Position numbers and translations under genes: made by a program. This document shows, piece after piece, positions 8,028-43,300 of a stretch of DNA of 64,000 nucleotides (position 1 is the first letter of the stretch; the number at the start of each line of letters is the position of its first letter). The stretch comes from Tubulanus polymorphus (lineage: Eukaryota > Animalia > Nemertea), in NCBI RefSeq assembly GCF_964204645.1, contig NC_134034.1:1054001-1118000 (forward strand). Reading direction: 5' to 3'. Below the pieces are notes generated by a model. It saw nothing but the letters and a program-made list of their open reading frames with translations, was not told the DNA's origin and did no database searches.

Positions 8028-11000
8028 ATGCACGATAACGGCGACGATTATTTCGATAAACTGGTGCTGGAGAGACGGGCGAGACTGACGAGGATTCTCA
8101 ACCCAATGGAATCGTTAATTACACGCGTGCAGAGCGTGCTGGTTTGGGAAAAACCCTGGATCAGTACAACTGCGTTAATTGCAGCGAATATTCTGTTTTG
8201 GTAAGTAGTAAGTGACTGTTCCCTTTACTTGTAAGTCCTCTTGCTCGTAAATATCGATTAAAGTTTTGGAATCACCCCCTGAATTGTGTCGTGTTGGTTA
8301 TTGATTTCTTGCACACAGAAATTAGGTCAAATCAATAATCTAATTTAATTCCTGCACTGAAGTGAAGTAGGCCTAGTTGTTAATTACTAACCAAGACAGT
8401 TAATTGACCTAGTTGATTAATTGGCTCAATTTTCTTATTCAATTAAAGTTTGAGTTTGGAATTTCTTTTTGTTTTCATTGCAGGCAGGCGCCTAGCAAAT
8501 TGTGCTGTAGTTTTAGGTCCCTTTTGACATGAAAAATGTTAAGTTTATTACCCCAAAGTACCTAATTGATTTTTGTTCCCTTACCCTCCGTGCTATGCAG
8601 AAATTGAGCTGAAATTTATTTGAGGGTAGGGTTATGAAAGTGCAATAAATAGGGCCCATGTTTGGTATATCAGATTTTTCAGGGGCATATTTTCCTGATG
8701 ATGCATTTTGTAATTTCAAAAATTGTGTCTCGTTTTTTTCCTAGGATAATTACGCATACAAGCTACAGATTTGTGTATATAATGTGTATGACAGCTTTAA
8801 TATTGATCATCTCGGAAACTTGGAAAAAACGAATCTGGCCAGAAATTAAAGGTATAGTAACCTTTTTGATAGTCTTTTCTTTCTCTTTGTCTTTTCTCTT
8901 GTTTTTTCATTAATTGGTGTTTGCTGTAGCGGCCTTCTGGCTTTTACTTGACCCTCATCAAAAAGCCTTCTCAATTTGATTCTGGGCTCGTAATTCTTTC
9001 AGAGCTGCCGACTGTTCCTGATTTTCTATAATATCGTGTTTCTATTTTCCCCCGAAAAATAATGATTCGATTTTTTTTTATGCATCTAGAAATATGAAAA
9101 ATGTTATCGGGGCCATAACTGATTAATTTGAACAATTTCTTTCTTCACTCTGAAAATCAGCCACCCCTTAAGAAATGAGGAGAGAATCCCACAATGATAA
9201 TTAAAAAAAAAAAATGTCTGCTCTGCCCCTATCAGAGTGGATGTCAATATTCTATCAACGCTGATAATTGCTTTGTGAAAATGGAAGATTAGATGGAAGA
9301 GACAGTAGATTTAAACCAAATTTAGCTTCATTATCTGTTTTTTTTTGGGGAGGGGGGGAATCGAAAGCCTCGGCACTTCAACAGCCATGATGTCATTAAC
9401 AATGAATGCAGCCCTATAAATATGCAGAACACTATGTCTTTATATTTTACTGTTTTCCTCATCATTTAGGAGAATTAGGAAAGTGTTAATTATTGGTTTC
9501 TTTTGTGGTTGCGACCATAGAATGACGTGGTGTAAGGAAATCATTGAATAGAGTTCACTGAATACAAGCTATTATTCTATATAATATTGAAACAGCTGTG
9601 ATCAGCTGTGAATCAGGAGTACTACTAAATAATAGTGACGTTTGAAATATGCGCAGTTCTTATTCAACTCCGCAGTGCAGAATTTCATTTCATTCATACC
9701 AGGGACCTGTTATTCAGTCACAGCCTTCAGTTAGCCAATCAGTCTGTCCTTCAGCTAAATGTTAATTCAACGTTTTGACTATATCCTAATAGTCATCTTC
9801 AGGAATACTGTATTCCTTGAGCTAGTGTAGTTTATTCAACGTTTCGACTATATCCTAATAGTCATCTTCAGGAATACTGTATTCCTTGAGCTAGTGTAGT
9901 TTATTCAACGTTTCGACTATATCCTAATAGTCATCTTCAGGAATACTGTATTCCTTGAGCTAGTGTAGTTTATTCAACGTTTCGACTATATCCTAATAGT
10001 CATCTTCAGGAATACTGTATTCCTTGAGCTAGTGTAGTTTATTCAACGTTTCGACTATATCCTAATAGTCATCTTCAGGAATACTGTATTCCTTGAGCTA
10101 GTGTAGTTTATTCAACGTTTCGACTATATCCTAATAGTCATCTTCAGGAATACTGTATTCCTTGAGCTAGTGTAGTTTATTCAACGTTTCGACTATATCC
10201 TAATAGTCATCTTCAGGAATACTGTATTCCTTGAGCTAGTGTAGTTTATTCAACGTTTCGACTATATCCTAATAGTCATCTTCAGGAATACTGTATTCCT
10301 TGAGCTAGTGTAGTTTATTCAACGTTTCGACTATATCCTAATAGACATCTTCAGGAATACTGTATTCCTTGAGCTAGTGTAGTTTATTCGACGTTTCGAC
10401 TATATCCTAATAGTCATCTTCAGGAATACTGTATTCCTTGAGCTAGTGTAGTTTATTCAACGTTTCGACTATATCCTAATAGTCATCTTCAGGAATACTG
10501 TATTCCTTGAGCTAGTGTAGTTTATTCAACGTTTCGACTATATCCTAATAGTCATCTTCAGGAATACTGTATTCCTTGAGCTAGTGTAGTTTATTCAACG
10601 TTTCGACTATATCCTAATAGACATCTTCAGGAATACTGTATTCCTTGAGCTAGTGTAGTTTATTCGACGTTTCAACTATATCCTGATAATCATCTTCAGG
10701 AATACTATGAAATATGATAGGTCAAAAATCCCCTACCCTGAATTCATTCAACTTTACAATAACATTAAGTACATACAACTCGAAGAGAAGCTGAACTCGA
10801 TATTTTCAATGTTTGTATTCTATTTTTTACTACGGGCGCGAACAAGCAACAGCAGCAGGATCTCAGAAATATCTCGCCCTCCGCTGCGCGAGAAGCATTC
10901 CTATATCATCTTATATCCCACGAGCTCAACAGTCTATTTTACACAGTTACTGCGCGCGAGTTATCTATTATCATTTTGCTCACATTATCGTACGCTCTGG

Positions 11001-14000
11001 TTTAATTCCCCTTTTGCGAAATTGATTTCCACATTTTCCGAATCAAAGCTTGAAAGTTCGGCTATAGGGGTATAGATATATTTCTGTTTCAAATGTAATC
11101 AAATAATCTAAAACTTGAAATCAGGAGGAATTCTCACTTTCTTTTTTTTCGTTGACAGTTCCGACTCCGGAAGATGAAGATAAAGAAGGGTAAGTTATTT
11201 CTTATTTTGATTATTTTGAATTCTGGCCATTCGATTTAGGGTTGTAAAATCACTTAACGGTTTCAGTGAAAAGTACTTTAAGTAATTGAAGTCACACGTT
11301 GGCTATTAGCCAGTAGGTATGCAGGTGACAATTACATATACTCATATTAATCTAGTGCATCAGAACTTACATATTTCACTGGAATTAAGGAGTTTAACTT
11401 GTGTGAGGACAATTTAGAGCTGGGTTAATCTATAGTTGTGAAACCGGGTTGGCAGTTCTGGATCCAGTTCTACAGTTCTGGACCCTGATCTACTGTTCAG
11501 GACTCAGTTCCACAGTTCTGGATCCAGTTCCACAGTCTGGACTCAGTTCCACAGTTCTGGATCCAGTTCCACAGTTCTGGATCCAGTTCTACAGTTCTGG
11601 ACCCTGATCTACTGTTCAGGACTCAGTTCCACAGTTCTGGATCCAGTTCCACAGTCTGGACTCAGTTGCACAGTTCTGGGTCCAGTTCCACAGTTCTGGA
11701 TCCAGTTCCACAGTTCTGGACTCAGTTCCACAGTTCTGGATCCAGTTCCACAGTTCTGGACTCAGTTCCACAGTTCTGGATCCAGTTCCACAGTTCTGGA
11801 TCCAGTTCTACAGTTCTGGACTCAGTTCCACAGTTCTGGATCCAGTTGCACAGTTCTGGATCCAGTTGCACTTTTCTGGACTCAGTTCAACAGTTCTGGA
11901 CTCAGTTCCACAGTTCTGGATCCAGTTCCACAGTTCTGGATCCAGTTCCACAGTCTGGACTCAGTTGCACAGTTCTGGGTCCAGTTCTACAGTTCAGGAA
12001 TCAAGTTCCACAGTTCTAGATCCAGTTCTACAGGTCTGGACTGAAGTGACAGTTCTGGACTGAAGTTCCACATTCCTGGACCCACTTCCACAGTTTTCGA
12101 TACAGTTCCACAGTTCTGGATTCAAGTTCCACAGTCTAGGGCTGCAGATTTATTGTTTATTTCTAGTTGGACGGCTGTTCACCCGAGATTGATGTCAGTT
12201 CCCGAGTTATGTCACTATATCGCTGAGCTATGGACCACCGGAACGATGCTGTTTAACGATTTCTGGAAATACAGACGTGAACACCCGGCTAAGGTGCGTA
12301 CGGCGGGTGTCATCAGTTTTCACTCAGATATCCGCAGTTATTTTCCTATAGATATTCAATTCAGGCTCAGTGTGTTAGCACCAGCTTAAAACCCTCTCAG
12401 TGTTGACTAATTAATACTCGAAAGTGCTGCAGATGATTTGAAATCGTTAAAAACTCAACCACAGAGTATTGTTTAACGGGGATACTAGTGCATCTACACC
12501 ACAGCGCGGTGTACTATCAGTTACAGGGTGTCATTAATACATCATGGTGCGATGTAATAGCTAGTGTTGTTTAACGGGGATACTAGTGGGTCTACACCAC
12601 AGCGCGGTGTACTGTTAGTTACAGGCTGTCATCAATACATCATGGTGCGATGTAATAGCTAGTGTTGTTTAACAGGGATACTAGTGCGTCTACACCACAG
12701 CGCGGTGTACTGTTAGTTACAGGCTGTCATCAATACATCATGGTGCGATGTAATAGCTAGTATTGTTTAACGGGGATACTAGTGCGTCTACACCACAGCG
12801 CAGTGTACTGTTAGTTACAGGGTGTCATCAATACATCATGGTGCGATGTAATAGCTAGTGTTGTTTAACGGGGATATTAGTGCGTCTACACCACAGCGCG
12901 GTGTACTGTTAGTTACAGGGTGTCATCAATACATCATGGTGCGATGTAATAGCTAGTGTTGTTTAACGGGGATACTAGTGCGTCTACACCACAGCGCGGT
13001 GTACTGTTAGTCACAGGGTGTCATCAATACATCATGGTGCGATGTAATAGCCAGTGTTGTTCAACGGGGATATTAGTGCGTCTACACCACAGCGCGGTGT
13101 ACTGTTAGTTACAGGGTGTCATTAATACATCATGGTGCGATGTAATAGCTAGTGTTGTTTAACGGGGATAATAGTGCGTCTACACCACATCGCGGTGTAC
13201 TGTCAGTTACAGGGTGTCATTAATACATCATGGTGCGATGTAATAGCTAGTGTTGTTTAACGGGGATACTAGTGCGTCTACACCACAGCGCGGTGTACTA
13301 TCAGTTACAGGGTATCATCAATACACCGTGATGCTGTGTAATAGCTAAGTGTGTCACCGATTTATACACCGCACTGCGGTGTAGACGCACTGTAAAAGTT
13401 TGAATAAATGTAAAATGGTTTGAAAAAATGTTTGCGTCTAATTTCAGTTTTGCGTTTTGACTTCAATCGGTTTTACAATATTAGCAGTTATCGGACATTT
13501 CATATCAGGAATAATGATCGCTTATATAACCAGTAAGTCGACATTGTCGCGTCGGTTTCTACGGTAATGTATTGAGTTTGTAGCTACGGTAACGACGGTA
13601 TCGCGTTTGTATTGTTGCAGTAATGAGTTTGTTGCTATGGCCGTGCGTCGCCTACAACAGTTTACTACATAAAATATATATGAAATTTGAGCCGATGTTG
13701 ATGCAGTTGGAATACAGTATGAAAATAAACAGACGGCGACACAGATCTACAAAGAGTATGTATTAGAGATGATGTCATAGGGGGATTTATAGAGGCAGAC
13801 ATCATTTCTAGAAGTGTCTATAGATCAAATAACTAGTTGGTAATTTGATGATGTCATAGGGGTATTTTATGGAGGCAGACATCTTTTCTAGAAGTGTCTA
13901 TAAATCAAATCAATGGTAGACAATTTGATGATGTCATAGGGGGATTTATGTAGGCAGACATCTTTTCTAGAAGTGCCTATAGATCAAATCAATGGTAGAC

Positions 14001-15815
14001 AATTTGATGATGTCATCGAGGGATTTATAGAGGCAGACATCTTTTCTAGAAGTGTCTATTAATCAAATCACTGGTAGATAATTTGATGATGTCATAGGGG
14101 GATTAATAGGGGCATACATCTTTTGTGTTTATAGATCACTAGTAAACAATTTGATGATGTCATAGGGGGATTTGTAAAGGCAGACATCTTTTCTGTTAGG
14201 GTCTATAGATCAAATCACTGGTAGACAATTTGATGATGGCATAAGAGGTATTCATGGAAAATGTTTTATTTTGTTTGTAGAGCGTTGTGGTGATGAGGTA
14301 GAGAAGGAGGATAGTAAGGATCACGTTGAGACCGATACGGACAGCGAACTCGGCGAGTTCTGTCCGTCGTCGATCAGCGCCGAGGCGACGGCCGCGTTAG
14401 CTCGAGCGATCACCGACAGCGAGGACGAACGAGCGTCGTCTAGATCGCAGTCTCCGGAGTTAGAACCGCGCGATGATGTCGTCAATGGTACGAGTTATAA
14501 TAGTTCAATCGATATGTTTTTACCGTCGACCGATTCGGCTAGTTTTCCCGGTACGTGTGGCGCCCTCTATTAATATACTACTAGCTCCACCTATTGCTTC
14601 TATAACGAGTACAACTACAGCAGGGTTCTTACGGATCAAGGAAATTCGAGTCTGCTTTGTAAATCAGGGAATAAAGTCGGGGAATTTGAAAAAGAGCTTT
14701 GTGCCGAATTTGGATTTATTAATCTGTAAGAACTCTGTACGACAGCATGTTGGTTTATGTTTTCTAACAAGGACAGAGGCGGTCCGGACCCTCGCCATCC
14801 CATTGAGGTTGCCCTTTCCGTCAAGCTGCACTTTGACACTCATCCTTTCAGAATTAACATCTCTTTAAATACTCAAATACTGACGGAGGGACCTCACTAG
14901 TGGACCTCAATAGGAGGGACCTCACTAGGACGGACCTCACTAGTGGGCCTCACTAGTGGACCTCAACAGGAGGGATGCTAGTGGACCTCAATAGGAGGGA
15001 CCTCACTATGACGGACCTCACCTGCTTTATCCCAAAAATGCCTTTTCTTTTCACCTGGACTCCAAATGTCCTAAATCCGCCTCTGGTATCGAATTCTCGG
15101 GTCACAAATTTACGTTCGGTATTTTCCAGATATCGAAAACGACACGGATTTGGAACCGTTTATGAGCGAGTTGGCGTTACCGTCGTACGACAGTTCAATC
15201 CTCGACGTCACAGACTCAACGCCGCCGGTTCAACAACAATTACTCGTTCCGAGAACTGTAACGCCACCTGGTGATAAAAAAGATAAAGACGGCAGCAGCA
15301 GTAGCATGCATTTTAAAGAGACACATTTCAAAGAATCGTCGTCCTCGGAGGACGACGCCGATGAGACGCTTATCGCCGGTTTGAATTTCCCCGATCTGGC
15401 CGATGTGCCGAGCGAAACCGGCGCGGCGACCGAAAAAGCGATAATGGCTGCCTCGTACGCTGGATCGGTCGTCTCAAAGACAATCGGCACGGTGATGACG
15501 GGCACGATTAGCGGAATTAGTAAGATAGGTGGCGCCGTCGTTGCTCAGGTTTCGAAAAAGTCGGATTCGGAAGTTCCGTCTGCTCTTGAGGCAGATCCGT
15601 CTGCCGGAGTTGCGGATCCGTCTGCCAGTGTTGCAGACCCGTCTGCCGGAGTCGTGGATCCGTCTGCCGGAGTCGTGGATCCGTCTGCCGGAGTTGTGGA
15701 TCCATCTGCCAGCGCGACAATAGGACACTCAAATACGGCTGATTCGGATTTAGCGGATTTCGAAGTTTTAGATCGCGACGAACTCGACACCGACTCGAAT
15801 ATTAATCAAAATTGA
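8028..15815 (+). CDS. RETREG3: Reticulophagy regulator (FAM134/RETREG family, most like RETREG3), ~516 aa, 8 coding exons
   Basis: Exons 8028-8200, 8745-8851, 11159-11189, 12167-12293, 13448-13532, 13621-13755, 14281-14487, 15130-15815. GT-AG, 1551 nt. Motifs RVQSVLVWEKP, KKRIWPEIKV, WTAVHPRLMSVPELCHYIAE, EHPAKFCV (reticulon-homology domain), DTDSELGEFCP and the C-terminal LIR DSDLADFEVLDRDEL. The paralog name is approximate. Confidence 0.92.
9764..10706 (-). ncRNA. Tandem array of 14 x 69-bp units, each containing a minimal type I hammerhead ribozyme-like motif (retrozyme/Penelope-like remnant)
   Basis: Minus-strand unit: UAUUC-CUGAAGA-U-GACUAU(UAGGAU)AUAGUC-GAAAC-GUU/GUC-GAAUA-AAC. It has core boxes CUGANGA and GAAA, a 6-bp helix II, a 5-bp helix I, palindromic ACGU as helix III, an NUH triplet and an overlapping AAUAAA. 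The tandem repeat is certain; ribozyme activity is inferred. Confidence 0.75.
11450..12140. repeat. 20-bp satellite (CCAGTTCCACAGTTCTGGAT variants)
   Basis: About 30 or more degenerate tandem copies in RETREG intron 3. Same family, inverted, at 46800-46970, 59340-59550 and 63320-64000. Confidence 0.92.
12390..13397 (-). mobile_element. Inverted copy of the piggyBac-type MITE expanded by an internal 98-bp tandem array (~9 copies, 12465-13345)
   Basis: Flanks match the reverse complement of the 3219-3506 MITE (CCCTCTCAGTG..TAATTAATACTC.. and ..TACACCGCACTGCGGTGTAGACGCACTG). The unit contains AGTGCGTCTACACCACAGCGCGGTGTA; period 98 bp (12563, 12661, 12759). Confidence 0.8.
13770..14258. repeat. 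79-bp intronic satellite family (~6 copies)
   Basis: GATGATGTCATAGGGGGATTTA... units fill RETREG intron 6. Confidence 0.9.
14885..15022. repeat. Short degenerate tandem repeat (GGACCTCACTAGT / GGACCTCAATAGGAG)
   Basis: About 9 GGACCTCA cores in RETREG intron 7. Confidence 0.75.
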
Positions 15816-40300: not shown

Positions 40301-43300
40301 TGGTTTCAAAAATCCGTCTGCTGAAATCAAAATAGCGTCGTTCAATTGTTGGCGATGTCTGATTGAAAATTTCGCAATCAACCAAAGTGAGTCTTGAAAA
40401 ATGGCTGCTCCCGTAAAATCGATGATGTCATAGGAGGATTTATGGTATTATTTTGAAATTTTTTTTAAAGAAATTTTGACTGACAATAAAAGGGTGAAGT
40501 TACTGATGCAAGTTTTCCGAATCAACAACGCGAAGGTCGAATCGGTCGCCCTTGTCAAGGTCAAGGTCTGGTGGTATTTCATTCGGCGGCTCGGCGACAA
40601 AGCATCGCATTTTTTCGACGCAGTAAGTGTTTATTTAGATCTCTAGCTTACGATAAGACCGGGTTGAGCGCTGGCTTTGGTCCAGTTCCGTTGATTCTGT
40701 GGTTAATGTTTTCAGGTGTTGCTGCCATTGCTGCATTTTCTGTTCGGCACCTCGGCTAAGTCGAACGTTCCCATCACACCGTCGAGGAAACAGTCCCTGG
40801 CAGGCGGGGGCATTCCGACCACGCCTACTACTAACCCAATTATCCAAAATCTAGGTCAGTATTGAAAATTTATTTTTGAATTTATTTTTGTTGATCGGTT
40901 TAACAGTGCTTGCTAACTAATATCTTTTAGTGCTGGAGATGATTTGAACATTTCAAAAAATTTCCACCCCAGCGTAATTAGTGCGTCTACCCCATGGTGC
41001 GGTGTATTCTTAATTACTAATAGTTTGCTATGTTCGACAGATGCTGCCATCTTTCAATAGAGATAAAAACTAAATACGAATTTACGTTAATACACAGCAG
41101 TGCGGTGCCCAAGCGAAGTCCATCACCGATTTATACACCGCACTGGGTTGTAAATGCGGTGTAGAAAGGCTTTTAATTATCACACAAGATTTTCTCCGCG
41201 TTGCAGGTCTTGGCACGCCGTCGACGCCGAAGTTGAATTTATCTTCGCTAGGTGGCGCTACGTCGTTCAAATCTATTCAGAAGCTCGGCTGTGAAGTGAT
41301 CGCTCATATTCTGTGCGCGCCAGACGCGGAGAACAACAAATCGTTTGAGTTTACGTTAGGTGAGCTGGAAATTGTGAAAAAAAGGGTCACGTCTGCTTGA
41401 GATATTGTGGAAAAATGGCCTCGGGGTCAGATACATTTGAGAAAAAAGATCTGCTAGATGGTTGCTTTAAATCTTTGAAAAAACATGGAACTGTATGATG
41501 TATATAAAAAAATTCTTGTGATTCTCTCTGAAAAATGGGTTATCTGCTTTAAATATTGATTATGAAAATTGATCTTAGAAAAATCGTGAAACCGTTGCGA
41601 TCCGGGATTAGGTTCCTGTTACTGATTCGATCGCGATCTCGTTTCAGAACCGTTAGAAGCGAGCGCGATCGCCGGGCCGACGTTTTTCAATAAATACGGC
41701 ATCGCGTTGATTCACGCCGTCTGCGAAAGTTTCCGTCAAGAAATATCAGGTCAGTGAAAACGGGGCGACTCCTGCGACTCCTCAACTCCTTAAAAACTCC
41801 TTCTAAACTGAAAATGCTTTTAAAGGTGCTTTAAACTCCTTTCATTTGAACACAATGCCCAAAACTCCTTTACGATGGCTGTTAGTCAACAGCCGAAAAG
41901 TTGTGGTTTCATTTTAATAAATTATTTCATATAAAATTCGAATTTTGGCACTTCTTCAATTAATCCTTCAAACTCCTTCAATATTGAGAAGTACATAATT
42001 AGAAATTAGAGAACAGTTGGAACCAGGATTTTTTTAACCCGTTTATGCGGTTTTATTTTTTGTTTCTAGACGAGTTGATGATGTATATTTGGAATTCGTT
42101 GGTTTATCACGTCCGTCGTGTGATCACAGACGTACCGAAACCGATCAATGTCGAGGTCGTTGTACAGTTCCTGGTCGCGTTCCGAAACGTTCTCATCAAC
42201 GATACGCTACCGACCGACATCGCCACGGTACCCAGTCAATTCAAAATTTAAAAAGCGTCTGCCATTTCATTCGCGTAGGGAATTTGAATTTCTGGAAAAA
42301 AATTTTTTTTGAATTTTTTTTTTTCAGAATATGTTTCTGGCCGTCAGCCGTCTGCCCAACAAAGCGCTCGCTTCTCCGTCTTATCACGTCGGTAACATGT
42401 TACAGGTAAGATGTCTGCTTACATAAATCACCCTATGACATCATCAGATTTTTTCGATTAATCATTTTATATCTAAAAACACTACTAGAAAAGATGTCTG
42501 CCTCCATGAATCCCCCTATGACATCATCAAATTGTCTACTAGTGATTTGATCTATAGACACTACTAGAAAAGATGTCTGCCTCCATGAATCCCCCTATAT
42601 TCCTACAATGGCCGCCTTCGTAAATCCCCCTATGACACCATCAAATTTTCTACTAGTGATTTGATCTATAGACACTTCTAGAAAAGATGTCTGCCTCCAT
42701 AAATCCCCCTATGACATCATCAGATTTCTATTTCAGACGGTTCCTGCTCAGTATTTGCTACATCTTTTATTTGAATCAAATCTGCTATTATTATGTATCG
42801 TACGAGATGAAAGGTTAGTACTAAACGTTGGCACGGAGTCGTGGACTGGCATTTGGCCTCGCGGTTTTTCTAAAAAAAAAAAAAGAAGAAATTAACTTAT
42901 AATTTGAAATATTTTGTTAACGATTTTTTTTTCGCCAGATTTTTCGTGATATTTGAAACGCTCGTGAAGTCGGGGTTCATATTCCAGCCGTTGAACTTCG
43001 TGGAGAACACGCTGGAGTTGGTGATACAAGCGTCTGATCGGATCGGTAATGCGGAGATGTTGTGGAGACTGTGGAGTTGTATCGTGAAACATCTACACCA
43101 TCACATCCAACAAGTACGTTCGATCCCCCTATGACATCATCGAATCCAACGAAACATGTCCGCCTCGAGTCCCCCTATGACATCATCTAATTGTCTAATG
43201 ATTTGATCTATTGACATTTACAAATAAGGGGTCCACCTTTATGAATCCCCCTATGACATCATCAAATTGGCAACTACCTAGGGATTCGGTGTATGGAAGA

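Follow-up and report, generated by a model that had tools for sequence, protein, structure and literature searches.

The window analysed here, the whole stretch of 64,000 nucleotides from Tubulanus polymorphus, carries a tandem array of 69-bp units, each built around a minimal hammerhead motif. The array probably represents a single locus of a satellite that is spread through the genome, mostly in subtelomeric positions, and is derived from a Penelope-like element (PLE); this satellite would have descended from the PLE by way of a 167-bp repeat and would have low ribozyme activity.

Tandem Repeats Finder (TRF) places a single array at 9761-10706, with a period of 69, 13.7 copies, 98% matches and zero indels. 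The 33-nt core of the motif is matched 14 times on the minus strand of the window, at 69-bp steps, compared with 0 matches in 100 shuffles. The array and its individually characterized parts are as follows:

9737-9769, minus strand: degenerate linker, then ~12 nt from the start of the long-unit tail (CAGACTGATT), from local alignment to the 170-bp long unit of locus L053
9761-10706, ribozyme sense on the minus strand: 69-bp hammerhead satellite array, 13.7 copies (TRF, direct sequence reading, core count against shuffles)
9761-9810 (core 9770-9802), minus strand: copy 1, 3'-most in the RNA sense, G12 changed to A; 50.9 bits
9830-9879, minus strand: copy 2, intact minimal hammerhead unit, predicted cut 9838/9837; 57 bits, E 2.5e-15 (covariance model R1)
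10313-10362, minus strand: copy 9, in which A10.2 has become U and helix II has a U-U mismatch; 51.1 bits
10382-10431, minus strand: copy 10, cleavage triplet GUC in place of GUU; 56.4 bits
10589-10638, minus strand: copy 13, A10.2 changed to U as in copy 9, with the helix II U-U mismatch
10658-10707, minus strand: copy 14, 5'-most in the RNA sense and most diverged, with 3 core mismatches; 42.7 bits

Read on the minus strand, a unit runs through UAUUC, CUGAAGA, an unpaired U, helix II, GAAA, ACGU, U17, GAAUA and a 25-nt linker. Helix II consists of 6 bp (GACUAU/AUAGUC) closed by the loop UAGGAU, the unpaired U stands between A9 and G10.1 in every unit of the window, and helix I has 5 bp (UAUUC/GAAUA), or 6 bp in the PLE copy. 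With the palindrome ACGU and no loop 3, helix III could be formed only between two units. CUGAAGA, GAAA and GUU or GUC stand in type I order in 13 of the 14 units, copy 1 having AAAA, and 10 units have the complete motif. The motif of copy 2 recurs identically in eight further units at 69-bp steps, so that nine units reach 57 bits (E 2.5e-15). Hammerheads depend on G12 for catalysis, and the ribozyme of copy 1, in which this residue is changed to A, is therefore probably dead. Copy 14 combines a GUC triplet with two G-U wobbles in helix II and one loop change. Each unit contains, in addition, a 17-nt palindrome and a second dyad of 18 nt. Similarity to the element stops at 9737-9769, just 3' of the last unit. 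The sole ORF of at least 90 aa touching the array flank was unconvincing, and the satellite is taken as ORF-less; no PLE ORF was found near the array in the window. The original prediction of a 14-copy array of 69-nt units thus agrees with TRF, and direct reading of the minus strand bears out the core boxes, helices and palindrome that it described, as well as its variants in copies 1, 9, 10, 13 and 14. Its predicted cuts, between 9838 and 9837 and then every 69 bp, are correctly placed, AAUAAA starts 1 nt past the predicted site, and the competing hairpin that it pointed out exists, with a full length of 7 bp (AGGAAUA-CAG-UAUUCCU).

The array lies upstream of the following exons of a host gene:

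11157-11188, plus strand: 32-nt internal exon (spliced contig joint 11188>12166 in the RNA-like run X2, and sequence)
12166-12291, 13446-13532, 13621-13755, 14281-14549 and 15129-15652 or beyond, plus strand: downstream exons (one 1,488-nt spliced contig, run X2)

The exon at 11157-11188 bears both a polypyrimidine/AG acceptor (..ttgacag|) and a donor (|gtaagt); it is therefore internal, which places the array in the preceding intron. The exons from 12166 to 15652 are separated by GT..AG introns. Of the earlier placement of the array antisense in a RETREG intron, the antisense intronic position is upheld by the spliced contig and the splice sites, while the name RETREG is unconfirmed, Pfam having returned no significant match for the two host-gene exon ORFs tested.

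As judged from its sequence and architecture, the satellite motif is a genuine minimal type I hammerhead of the known min-HHR type, which is the hammerhead of metazoan PLEs (PMC4209133). Published min-HHRs are characterized by one unpaired nucleotide between A9 and G10.1, G10.1-C11.1, a helix II of 6–8 bp and a helix I of 4–5 bp, together with a palindromic 15.2-16.2, the lack of loop 3 and an ill-defined loop 1 (PMC4209133). All of these sequence features are present in the satellite units, in accordance with the predicted type I hammerhead whose helix III forms only between two units. A satellite with two dyad symmetries could, on the other hand, happen to spell out the hammerhead boxes by chance. 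Such a reading may draw on a thermodynamic fold that is not a hammerhead, and on the search against Rfam that had been proposed as a check. With 2.5 kb and with 211 nt as query, the hammerhead models (types I, II and III, HH9 and HH10) stayed without a match up to E <= 10, and what permissive E-values did yield were chance fragments of snoRNA, miRNA and group I type. Although the motif still failed this standard test, the failure is expected since it has no helix III hairpin, and the result is consistent with the separate descriptor that min-HHRs have needed (PMC4209133).

Against chance stand not only the full set of defining min-HHR features and the identical core in PLE terminal repeats, but also sister families that keep the core and covary in both helices. 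Other min-HHR families of this genome give 1,652 matches compared with 6 in the control, and 319 compared with 11. A covariance model built solely from the PLE hammerhead families B and C recovers all 14 units at 42.7–57 bits (E 1e-11 to 1e-15), matches which partly reflect common descent because some flanking sequence (CAGUA upstream) is common to families A, B and C. Among 10 aligned sequences, helix II is 96.7% paired, with double-sided changes at five of its six pairs. The covariation score is 0.611, compared with 0.238 ± 0.037 in shuffled alignments (0/500) and at most 0.25 in slid registers. G10.1-C11.1 is invariant in all ten sequences, and the inner three pairs of helix I covary between families. 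The representatives for this formal pair count were chosen by eye from the match list, which is partly offset by an unselected genome sample, where helix II of 6–7 bp occurs in 16 of 30 matches, a single unpaired nucleotide follows A9 in all 16 structured matches, and 15.2-16.2 is CG or GC in 15 of these 16. Family D was omitted from the formal count, as MAFFT misaligned its helix II of 7 bp by shifting the register; its compensatory change (GCUUCUA/UAGAAGC vs GCUACUA/UAGUAGC) was seen by eye only. Covariation and PLE context together appear to leave the chance resemblance effectively refuted.

Genome-wide, the 33-nt core gives 1,471 + 1,430 (~2,900) matches in a pattern search, compared with 0 for the reversed control. 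The Penelope link of the original prediction is real, in that the identical core is found in the terminal repeat of a PLE of this genome with a reverse transcriptase (RT) and GIY-YIG ORF (L031, L032). This autonomous PLE has a 2,857-bp tandem unit and an ORF of 802 aa. Dispersed copies show variable target duplications of 8–14 bp and truncated inverted 5' copies, as in PLE insertions. A long unit of 167–170 bp, the junction of which occurs in 211 copies at spacings of 167, 236 or 334 bp, agrees with the terminal repeat of the PLE in 116 of 138 positions, and its tail alone scores 46.5 against that repeat, compared with 10.6 ± 6.0 in shuffles. The 69-mer corresponds to the first 65 and last 4 nt of this long unit, and is without the ~100 nt of PLE-like 3' tail which the 167-bp parent unit has kept. 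Loss of the domain enclosed by an AGGAAU/AUUCCU helix, through a reverse-transcriptase jump, was considered as the cause of the deletion and rejected, as the long unit shows no significant fold (z -0.40) and the helix is absent from its MFE and centroid structures. The satellite linker is found in 688 + 723 (~1,400) copies, compared with 0 for the control. The 69-mer satellite is mostly subtelomeric, all of the 100 listed of 1,411 satellite matches (contigs C1-C5) lying within ~1.2 Mb of contig ends. Arrays of varied lengths occur on several chromosomes, both length and position being freely variable, and a recognisable tail stands at the array end in only about half of 18 sampled arrays, so that mobilisation together with a tail is at most putative. 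Public metagenome contigs, scanned for exact occurrences of the core, gave no match, and no relevant paper came up in a literature search on hammerhead satellites of 69 bp.

From these relations we infer an order of descent and a mode of spread. An autonomous PLE would have carried the minimal hammerhead in its terminal repeat, from which a non-autonomous 167-bp tandem repeat, consisting of the hammerhead and a PLE-like 3' tail, would have arisen, and this unit would then have lost ~100 nt of its tail to become the 69-mer. Arrays were probably born within PLE-mobilised elements of hammerhead plus tail, whereas their later expansion and homogenisation probably took place at the DNA level, as in subtelomeric satellites. 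The hammerhead carried by every unit is thus genuine in its descent as well as in its architecture.

The host might instead make use of the repeat at the level of DNA or small RNA, as subtelomeric chromatin, as a source of piRNA or siRNA, or in antisense control of the host gene, with the hammerhead being irrelevant. The position of the listed matches near contig ends, the palindrome and dyad of each unit, the strong homogenisation of the units (98% identity), and the intronic placement of the array antisense to an expressed gene are all compatible with such use. However, none of the tests run speaks for a host function, array length and position vary freely, and a position at chromosome ends has been reported for retrozyme multimers generally. 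The source of that report is a preprint by Li, Clavereau & Pollet (2026; doi 10.64898/2026.07.22.740005), in which retrozymes are homologous to PLE terminal repeats and their multimers are enriched at chromosome termini or centres. We therefore regard host use as very unlikely, and the PLE-derived satellite as the preferred reading.

A minus-strand transcript, should one be made, could be cleaved only in a two-unit conformation, in which the ACGU sequences of two successive units would pair as a 4-bp helix III, helix I would form between the GAAUA that follows the site and the UAUUC of the next unit, and the cut would fall after GUU or GUC. The array had been proposed to be an active ultra-short retrozyme of this kind, whose minus-strand dimers would cleave themselves into 69-nt monomers, which might then be circularised by ligation and written back into the genome by the reverse transcriptase of the PLE. 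This is in keeping with the ten complete motifs in the window, with a tandem layout such as a dimer-only hammerhead needs (PMC4209133), and with an autonomous PLE bearing the same hammerhead. It is also in keeping with satellite-specific contigs in the RNA-like run, and with many arrays of varied length scattered over several chromosomes, a PLE-like tail standing behind about half of these arrays. Predicted folding argues otherwise, since the double hammerhead of the dimer reaches -12.3 kcal/mol compared with an MFE of -29.7 kcal/mol. The 7-bp palindromic hairpin, which exists because the deletion joined GGAAUA to UAUUCC, is favoured over the hammerhead fold by 6–17 kcal/mol and would sequester helix I and C3/U4. 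Nearest-neighbour energies omit tertiary contacts, co-transcriptional folding and protein help, and hairpin dominance may for that reason overstate inactivity.

A comparison across 134 genomic units gave the core no better conservation than the linker (0.0137 vs 0.0167 changes per site), in a test of low power on a homogenised satellite with ~1.5% variation. Core conservation was dropped as a sign of satellite function, as it does not differ from that of the linker. An uncompensated helix II mismatch is present in 46% of sampled units, and U27A in 62 of 134. Folding dominated by the hairpin and a core conserved no more than the linker had both been named beforehand as results that would count against self-processing, and both were found in silico.

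Published accounts point in the same direction, as min-HHRs cleave poorly in vitro (PMC4209133), with cleavage that is weak or assisted by PLE protein (PMC4209133, PMC11167929), and the 2026 preprint saw no cleavage in 8 of the 9 retrozyme dimers that it tested. The PLE reverse transcriptase that has been studied starts copying in the 3' tail region (PMC11167929), most of which the 69-mer is without. The RNA signal consists of contigs of 78–80 nt in run X2 that span the satellite linker; these carry neither strand nor ends, and may represent pre-mRNA or trace DNA. Per genomic copy, the signal is the weakest among neighbouring repeats, and the sequencing runs, none of which is recorded as RNA, were used as contigs only. 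Because of the hairpin, the lack of extra constraint on the core, and the poor or protein-dependent cleavage of published min-HHRs, efficient self-cleavage of the 69-mer is judged unlikely, and the active retrozyme as a whole improbable. There is a slim chance that the 69-nt unit is among the smallest reported natural self-processing, replicon-like hammerhead units, its dimers being cut, perhaps with the aid of PLE protein, and then circularising, with the hairpin as a switch against re-cleavage of the monomer. A PLE-derived satellite of low ribozyme activity is thus the reading that we prefer.

One genome holds the whole of the proposed series, namely the autonomous PLE, the 167-bp repeat of hammerhead plus tail, and the 69-bp satellite of nearly pure hammerhead, with an identical ribozyme core common to all three. 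The series provides a clean illustration, of invertebrate type, of the recent proposal that animal retrozymes come from PLE terminal repeats, and it shows a route from a ribozyme-bearing fragment of a mobile element to a subtelomeric satellite. Should the 69-mer process itself, the lower size bound of natural RNAs delimited by hammerheads would be moved down, and a very compact scaffold for small circular RNAs would be at hand. Should it not, as we judge more likely, then ribozyme function does not follow from a tandem array of perfect ribozyme motifs. For annotation, the ~5,000 PLE hammerheads of this genome are invisible to Rfam.

Among known systems, the double hammerhead described for newt RNAs and for avocado sunblotch viroid (Forster et al. 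1988, cited in PMC4209133) likewise pairs the helix III strands of two copies, to give one extended helix and two active sites. In that account, however, activity was demonstrated and the viroid is an RNA pathogen that replicates, whereas the conformation of the satellite is modelled and energetically disfavoured. Newt satellite 2, Schistosoma Sm-alpha and Dolichopoda pDo500, as they are cited in PMC4209133 and PMC7229834, also carry one type I hammerhead per satellite unit, with a weak helix III and activity that is better, or only found, as a dimer. According to the same citing papers, these classical satellites differ in having units of ~330–500 bp, a real short helix III hairpin and self-cleaving transcripts.

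Metazoan non-LTR retrozymes (PMC7229834; doi 10.64898/2026.07.22.740005) are likewise short tandem repeats of low GC and without ORFs, with one type I hammerhead per unit, in arrays from dimers to large multimers. The satellite unit of 69 nt, with a "loop 1" of 25 nt, falls outside their size of ~170–400 nt (PMC7229834), and the 167–170-bp parent stands at its low end. However, short unit length alone is not new, because the preprint reports consensus lengths of 51–972 bp for retrozyme families, which it derives from PLE terminal repeats, and this weakens the novelty claimed for an "ultra-short" element. Unlike retrozymes, which have a canonical hammerhead with tertiary contacts between loops 1 and 2 and are expressed as self-processed linear and circular monomers (PMC7229834), the present element has a minimal hammerhead of PLE type, and any processing or circles would be putative.

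With the min-HHRs of PLEs (PMC4209133; Anolis Poseidon, PMC11167929) the satellite shares the core, the unpaired nucleotide between A9 and G10.1, G10.1-C11.1 and the 6-bp helix II, as well as a short helix I (5–6 bp), a palindromic 15.2-16.2, the lack of loop 3 and a helix III formed between copies. For the hammerheads of this genome as a whole, the agreement extends to a location in PLE terminal repeats, to copies in the thousands, to a division into several families that covary, and to the frequent occurrence of two copies close together on opposite strands. Unlike those hammerheads, the motif of the window stands in a 69-bp satellite outside a PLE, which holds little beyond the hammerhead and has a competing hairpin at the deletion junction. 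The satellite is a clear new example of an already known kind of element.

A single tandem array occupies positions 9761-10706 of the window, with a period of 69, 13.7 copies, 98% matches and 0 indels (Tandem Repeats Finder). A 33-nt hammerhead core recurs in it 14 times at exact 69-bp steps, always on the minus strand, against 0 matches in 100 shuffles. Read on that strand, the unit comprises UAUUC (the 5' strand of helix I), CUGAAGA, an unpaired U, helix II, GAAA, ACGU, U17, GAAUA and a linker. Helix II is a perfect 6 bp (GACUAU/AUAGUC, loop UAGGAU), the palindrome ACGU has its A at 15.1 and its U at 16.1, and GAAUA, the 3' strand of helix I, is followed by 25 nt of linker. Three variants are found among the copies, numbered by rising coordinate:

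Copy 1, minus strand: G12 changed to A
Copies 9 and 13, minus strand: U-U mismatch in helix II
Copies 10 and 14, minus strand: GUC triplet

The original prediction had described this layout of core boxes, helices and palindrome, and direct reading bears it out in full; all the copy variants that it listed are present as stated, and its predicted cuts (between plus-strand 9837 and 9838 and every 69 bp after) and the AAUAAA following the site lie where it placed them. The observation of a tandem array of hammerhead motifs is confirmed in full.

The array had also been placed antisense within an intron, and this holds, since an adjacent exon carries splice signals and a spliced contig of X2, an RNA-like sequencing run, extends ~315 nt further 5' of that exon with no match to 9740-11156:

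11157-11188, plus strand: 32-nt internal exon with a polypyrimidine/AG acceptor and a GTAAGT donor

The gene name RETREG found no support from Pfam in the two exons tested. An ATG in the 32-nt exon is well placed to start translation of the host gene; should it do so, the hammerhead array would lie in a 5'-UTR intron. The same intron holds a repeat of 20-bp period (11453-12127), within a repetitive plus-strand ORF (11666-12019) encoding peptide repeats; its k-mer depth is very high in all three runs, and it is therefore another high-copy repeat family. Two more high-copy segments, 13322-13520 and 13720-14316, lie in host-gene introns, where contig depths in the DNA run add up to 4,000-33,000, single-copy sequence standing at ~30, and where loose ends and alternative joints are numerous.

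The minimal hammerhead (min-HHR) was defined for metazoan Penelope-like elements (PLEs) by Cervera & de la Pena (2014, PMC4209133), its traits including a conserved G10.1-C11.1 pair, a helix II longer than usual, and a 15.2-16.2 pair that is palindromic and lacks a loop 3, which makes the pairing of two copies necessary for helix III. Every type-defining feature is found in the satellite unit. The Rfam search proposed earlier, which is the standard test, gave no match to the hammerhead models on either strand at E <= 10, on 2.5 kb or on 211 nt; these models require a helix III hairpin, which the motif lacks. A generic descriptor designed to leave out the main family (N7 not A) has 835 + 817 genome matches versus 3 + 3 in the control; for a second one, which takes GC as the alternative palindrome, the figures are 154 + 165 versus 3 + 8. 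The helix II sequences of these other families (GGCUGU/ACAGCC, GGCUAA/UUAGCC, GAUCUC/GAGAUC, GCUUCUA/UAGAAGC) are mutually unrelated, their helix I sequences differ too (CCAC/GUGG, CACA/UGUG, UCAC/GUGA), and the architecture is common to all. In a gap-free alignment of ten sequences, with representatives picked by eye, 96.7% of helix II cells are paired, and two-sided changes occur in 5 of the 6 pairs; the covariation score is 0.611 versus 0.238 +/- 0.037 in shuffles (0/500 reach 0.611), and slid registers all stay at or below 0.25. As a check, the first 30 matches of a looser pattern were taken unselected: 16 have a helix II of 6-7 bp; in every one of these 16, A9 is followed by a single unpaired nucleotide, and in 15 of them the 15.2-16.2 pair is palindromic. 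A covariance model trained on families B and C only, leaving out the satellite and its family, finds 14/14 window units at 42.7-57 bits (E 7.5e-11 to 2.5e-15), part of this score reflecting common descent, since the families share some flanking sequence. The motif is a genuine PLE hammerhead.

Beyond the main family, the genome has at least four others of the min-HHR type (B, B2/B3, C, D; e.g. L058-L069), which together number ~2,000 copies; each has its own helix I and II sequences, close pairs on opposite strands are frequent, and none is seen by Rfam. The window itself contains a decayed solo family B copy (41860-41910, plus strand; helix II GGCUGU/ACAGCC), in which CUGAUGA has become UUUACGA and ACGU has become AAGU; the covariance model still gives it 34.3 bits (E 3e-8).

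With up to 3 mismatches, the 33-nt core has 1,471 + 1,430 copies in the 268-Mb genome, and its reversed control 0. Many are dispersed elements of ~170 nt (L001, L003, L009), with variable target duplications of 8-14 bp and a truncated inverted copy on the 5' side, at times forming ~100-nt perfect palindromes; min-HHR pairs on opposite strands were likewise described in 2014 (PMC4209133). Head-to-head pairs of PLE terminal repeats at L001 (1440-1640), L004, L015 and L024 make perfect palindromes of ~100 nt around a 5-nt centre, flanked by a target duplication of 14 bp; transcription of these loci would yield long hairpin RNAs. Other core copies are direct repeats spaced 2,857 bp apart, enclosing on the hammerhead strand an 802-aa ORF with RVT_1 (E 6e-10) and then a C-terminal GIY-YIG domain (E 1e-5). 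This is a canonical endonuclease-positive PLE, whose terminal repeats place the hammerhead ~100 nt ahead of the ORF and ~130 nt ahead of the element's 3' end. The suspected link to PLEs thus stands, the identical core lying inside the terminal repeat of such an element in the same genome.

The satellite-specific linker has 688 + 723 genome copies versus 0 in the control, so that about half of all cores of this family sit in 69-bp units. Among the 100 places listed, on contigs C1-C5, all lie within ~1.2 Mb of a contig end, and on C3 one array is 3.5 kb from the contig's end; the window is ~1.06 Mb into C10. Of 18 sampled arrays, about half run on into a common ~105-nt sequence, a tail leading to the next hammerhead. 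The junction of this tail with the hammerhead has 211 copies, spaced 167, 236 (167 + 69) or 334 bp apart, which indicates a 167-bp tandem repeat interspersed with 69-bp units. In pairwise alignment the 69-mer corresponds to 65 nt from the start of the long unit joined to 4 nt from its end, and so appears to be the product of a ~100-nt internal deletion of the long-unit tail; the window array runs out in the initial ~12 nt of this tail. The long unit in turn aligns to the PLE terminal repeat, from hammerhead to element 3' end, over 138 positions, of which 116 match, and its tail alone scores 46.5 versus 10.6 +/- 6.0 in shuffles. Because these alignments tie the 69-mer to the long unit and the long unit to the PLE, the series of three is well supported; descent would have run from PLE terminal repeat to 167-bp repeat to 69-bp satellite. 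The array is likely a PLE-derived hammerhead satellite.

Other satellites occur near some of the 69-bp arrays: at L052 (3134-3501; C2, ~31.47 Mb) a 31-bp satellite of 12 copies with 91% matches lies ~600 bp from a 23-copy 69-bp array, and at L055 (2118-2174; ~1.7 kb from the end of C3) five perfect copies of the 11-bp unit CCACAGTTCCA lie ~670 bp from a 7-copy array. Subtelomeric regions of this genome seem to be mosaics of several satellites.

Two adjacent units could fold a hammerhead, with ACGU/ACGU as helix III and the GAAUA after the site pairing with the next unit's UAUUC as helix I; as modelled, this structure is nested, with no pseudoknot. A single site in 73 nt is predicted at -5.3 kcal/mol (at best -8.6, with hammerhead helices enforced) versus a minimum free energy of -14.6, and the dimeric double hammerhead at -12.3 versus -29.7 kcal/mol. 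The winning fold includes a 7-bp hairpin, AGGAAUA-CAG-UAUUCCU, which would tie up C3 and U4 of the core as well as the 5' strand of helix I. Its arms are ~100 nt apart in the long unit, so the deletion junction created it, and it probably disables the ribozyme. Over 134 units (14 other loci and the window), changes per site are 0.0137 in the core, 0.0149 in helix I and 0.0167 in the linker, a comparison of low power in a homogenised satellite. In the most frequent variant (62/134 units), A replaces U at unit position 27, and a helix II pair is lost without compensation; taken with the similar core and linker rates, this leaves the satellite without sign of selection for the ribozyme. Published min-HHRs show no monomer cleavage and low-level cleavage as dimers or trimers (PMC4209133). 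For the Anolis PLE hammerhead the element's protein is needed, the hammerhead is dispensable for in vitro insertion, and in vivo its site is not marked by read ends (PMC11167929). Of 9 retrozyme dimers, 8 failed to cleave (2026 preprint, doi 10.64898/2026.07.22.740005). Efficient self-processing of the 69-mer in vivo appears unlikely. The full reading of the original prediction, an ultra-short mobile retrozyme, is right about a genuine PLE hammerhead motif, given the covariation and the PLE core, and falters on self-processing, given the predicted hairpin and the similar core and linker rates; we consider it decidedly improbable, and favour the PLE-derived satellite.

Among the runs that contain the stretch, none is recorded as RNA. 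X2 nevertheless behaves as RNA: one 1,488-nt contig links plus-strand exons across GT..AG introns, and several intron bins have zero depth. Contigs of 78-80 nt in X2, which carry neither strand nor ends, cross the satellite-specific linker (9777-9861), and the satellite's depth ratio to the DNA run, 0.06-0.09, is the lowest of the stretch's repeats (others 0.19-0.30). These contigs may represent intron-derived plus-strand RNA or trace DNA.

The min-HHR motif type was already published in 2014 (PMC4209133), and tandem hammerhead repeats with units of ~170-400 nt were described as non-LTR retrozymes in 2020 (PMC7229834). The derivation of retrozymes from PLE terminal repeats is reported in a 2026 preprint (doi 10.64898/2026.07.22.740005), which also finds an enrichment of multimers at chromosome termini or centres, gives 51-972 bp as the range of family consensus lengths, and uses a search pipeline that takes in minimal hammerhead models. 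The locus is a new, unusually complete example of a published kind of element; particular to it are the one identical core common to all three stages in a single genome, a hairpin that arose with the deletion and probably disables the ribozyme, and a satellite stripped of nearly everything but the ribozyme.
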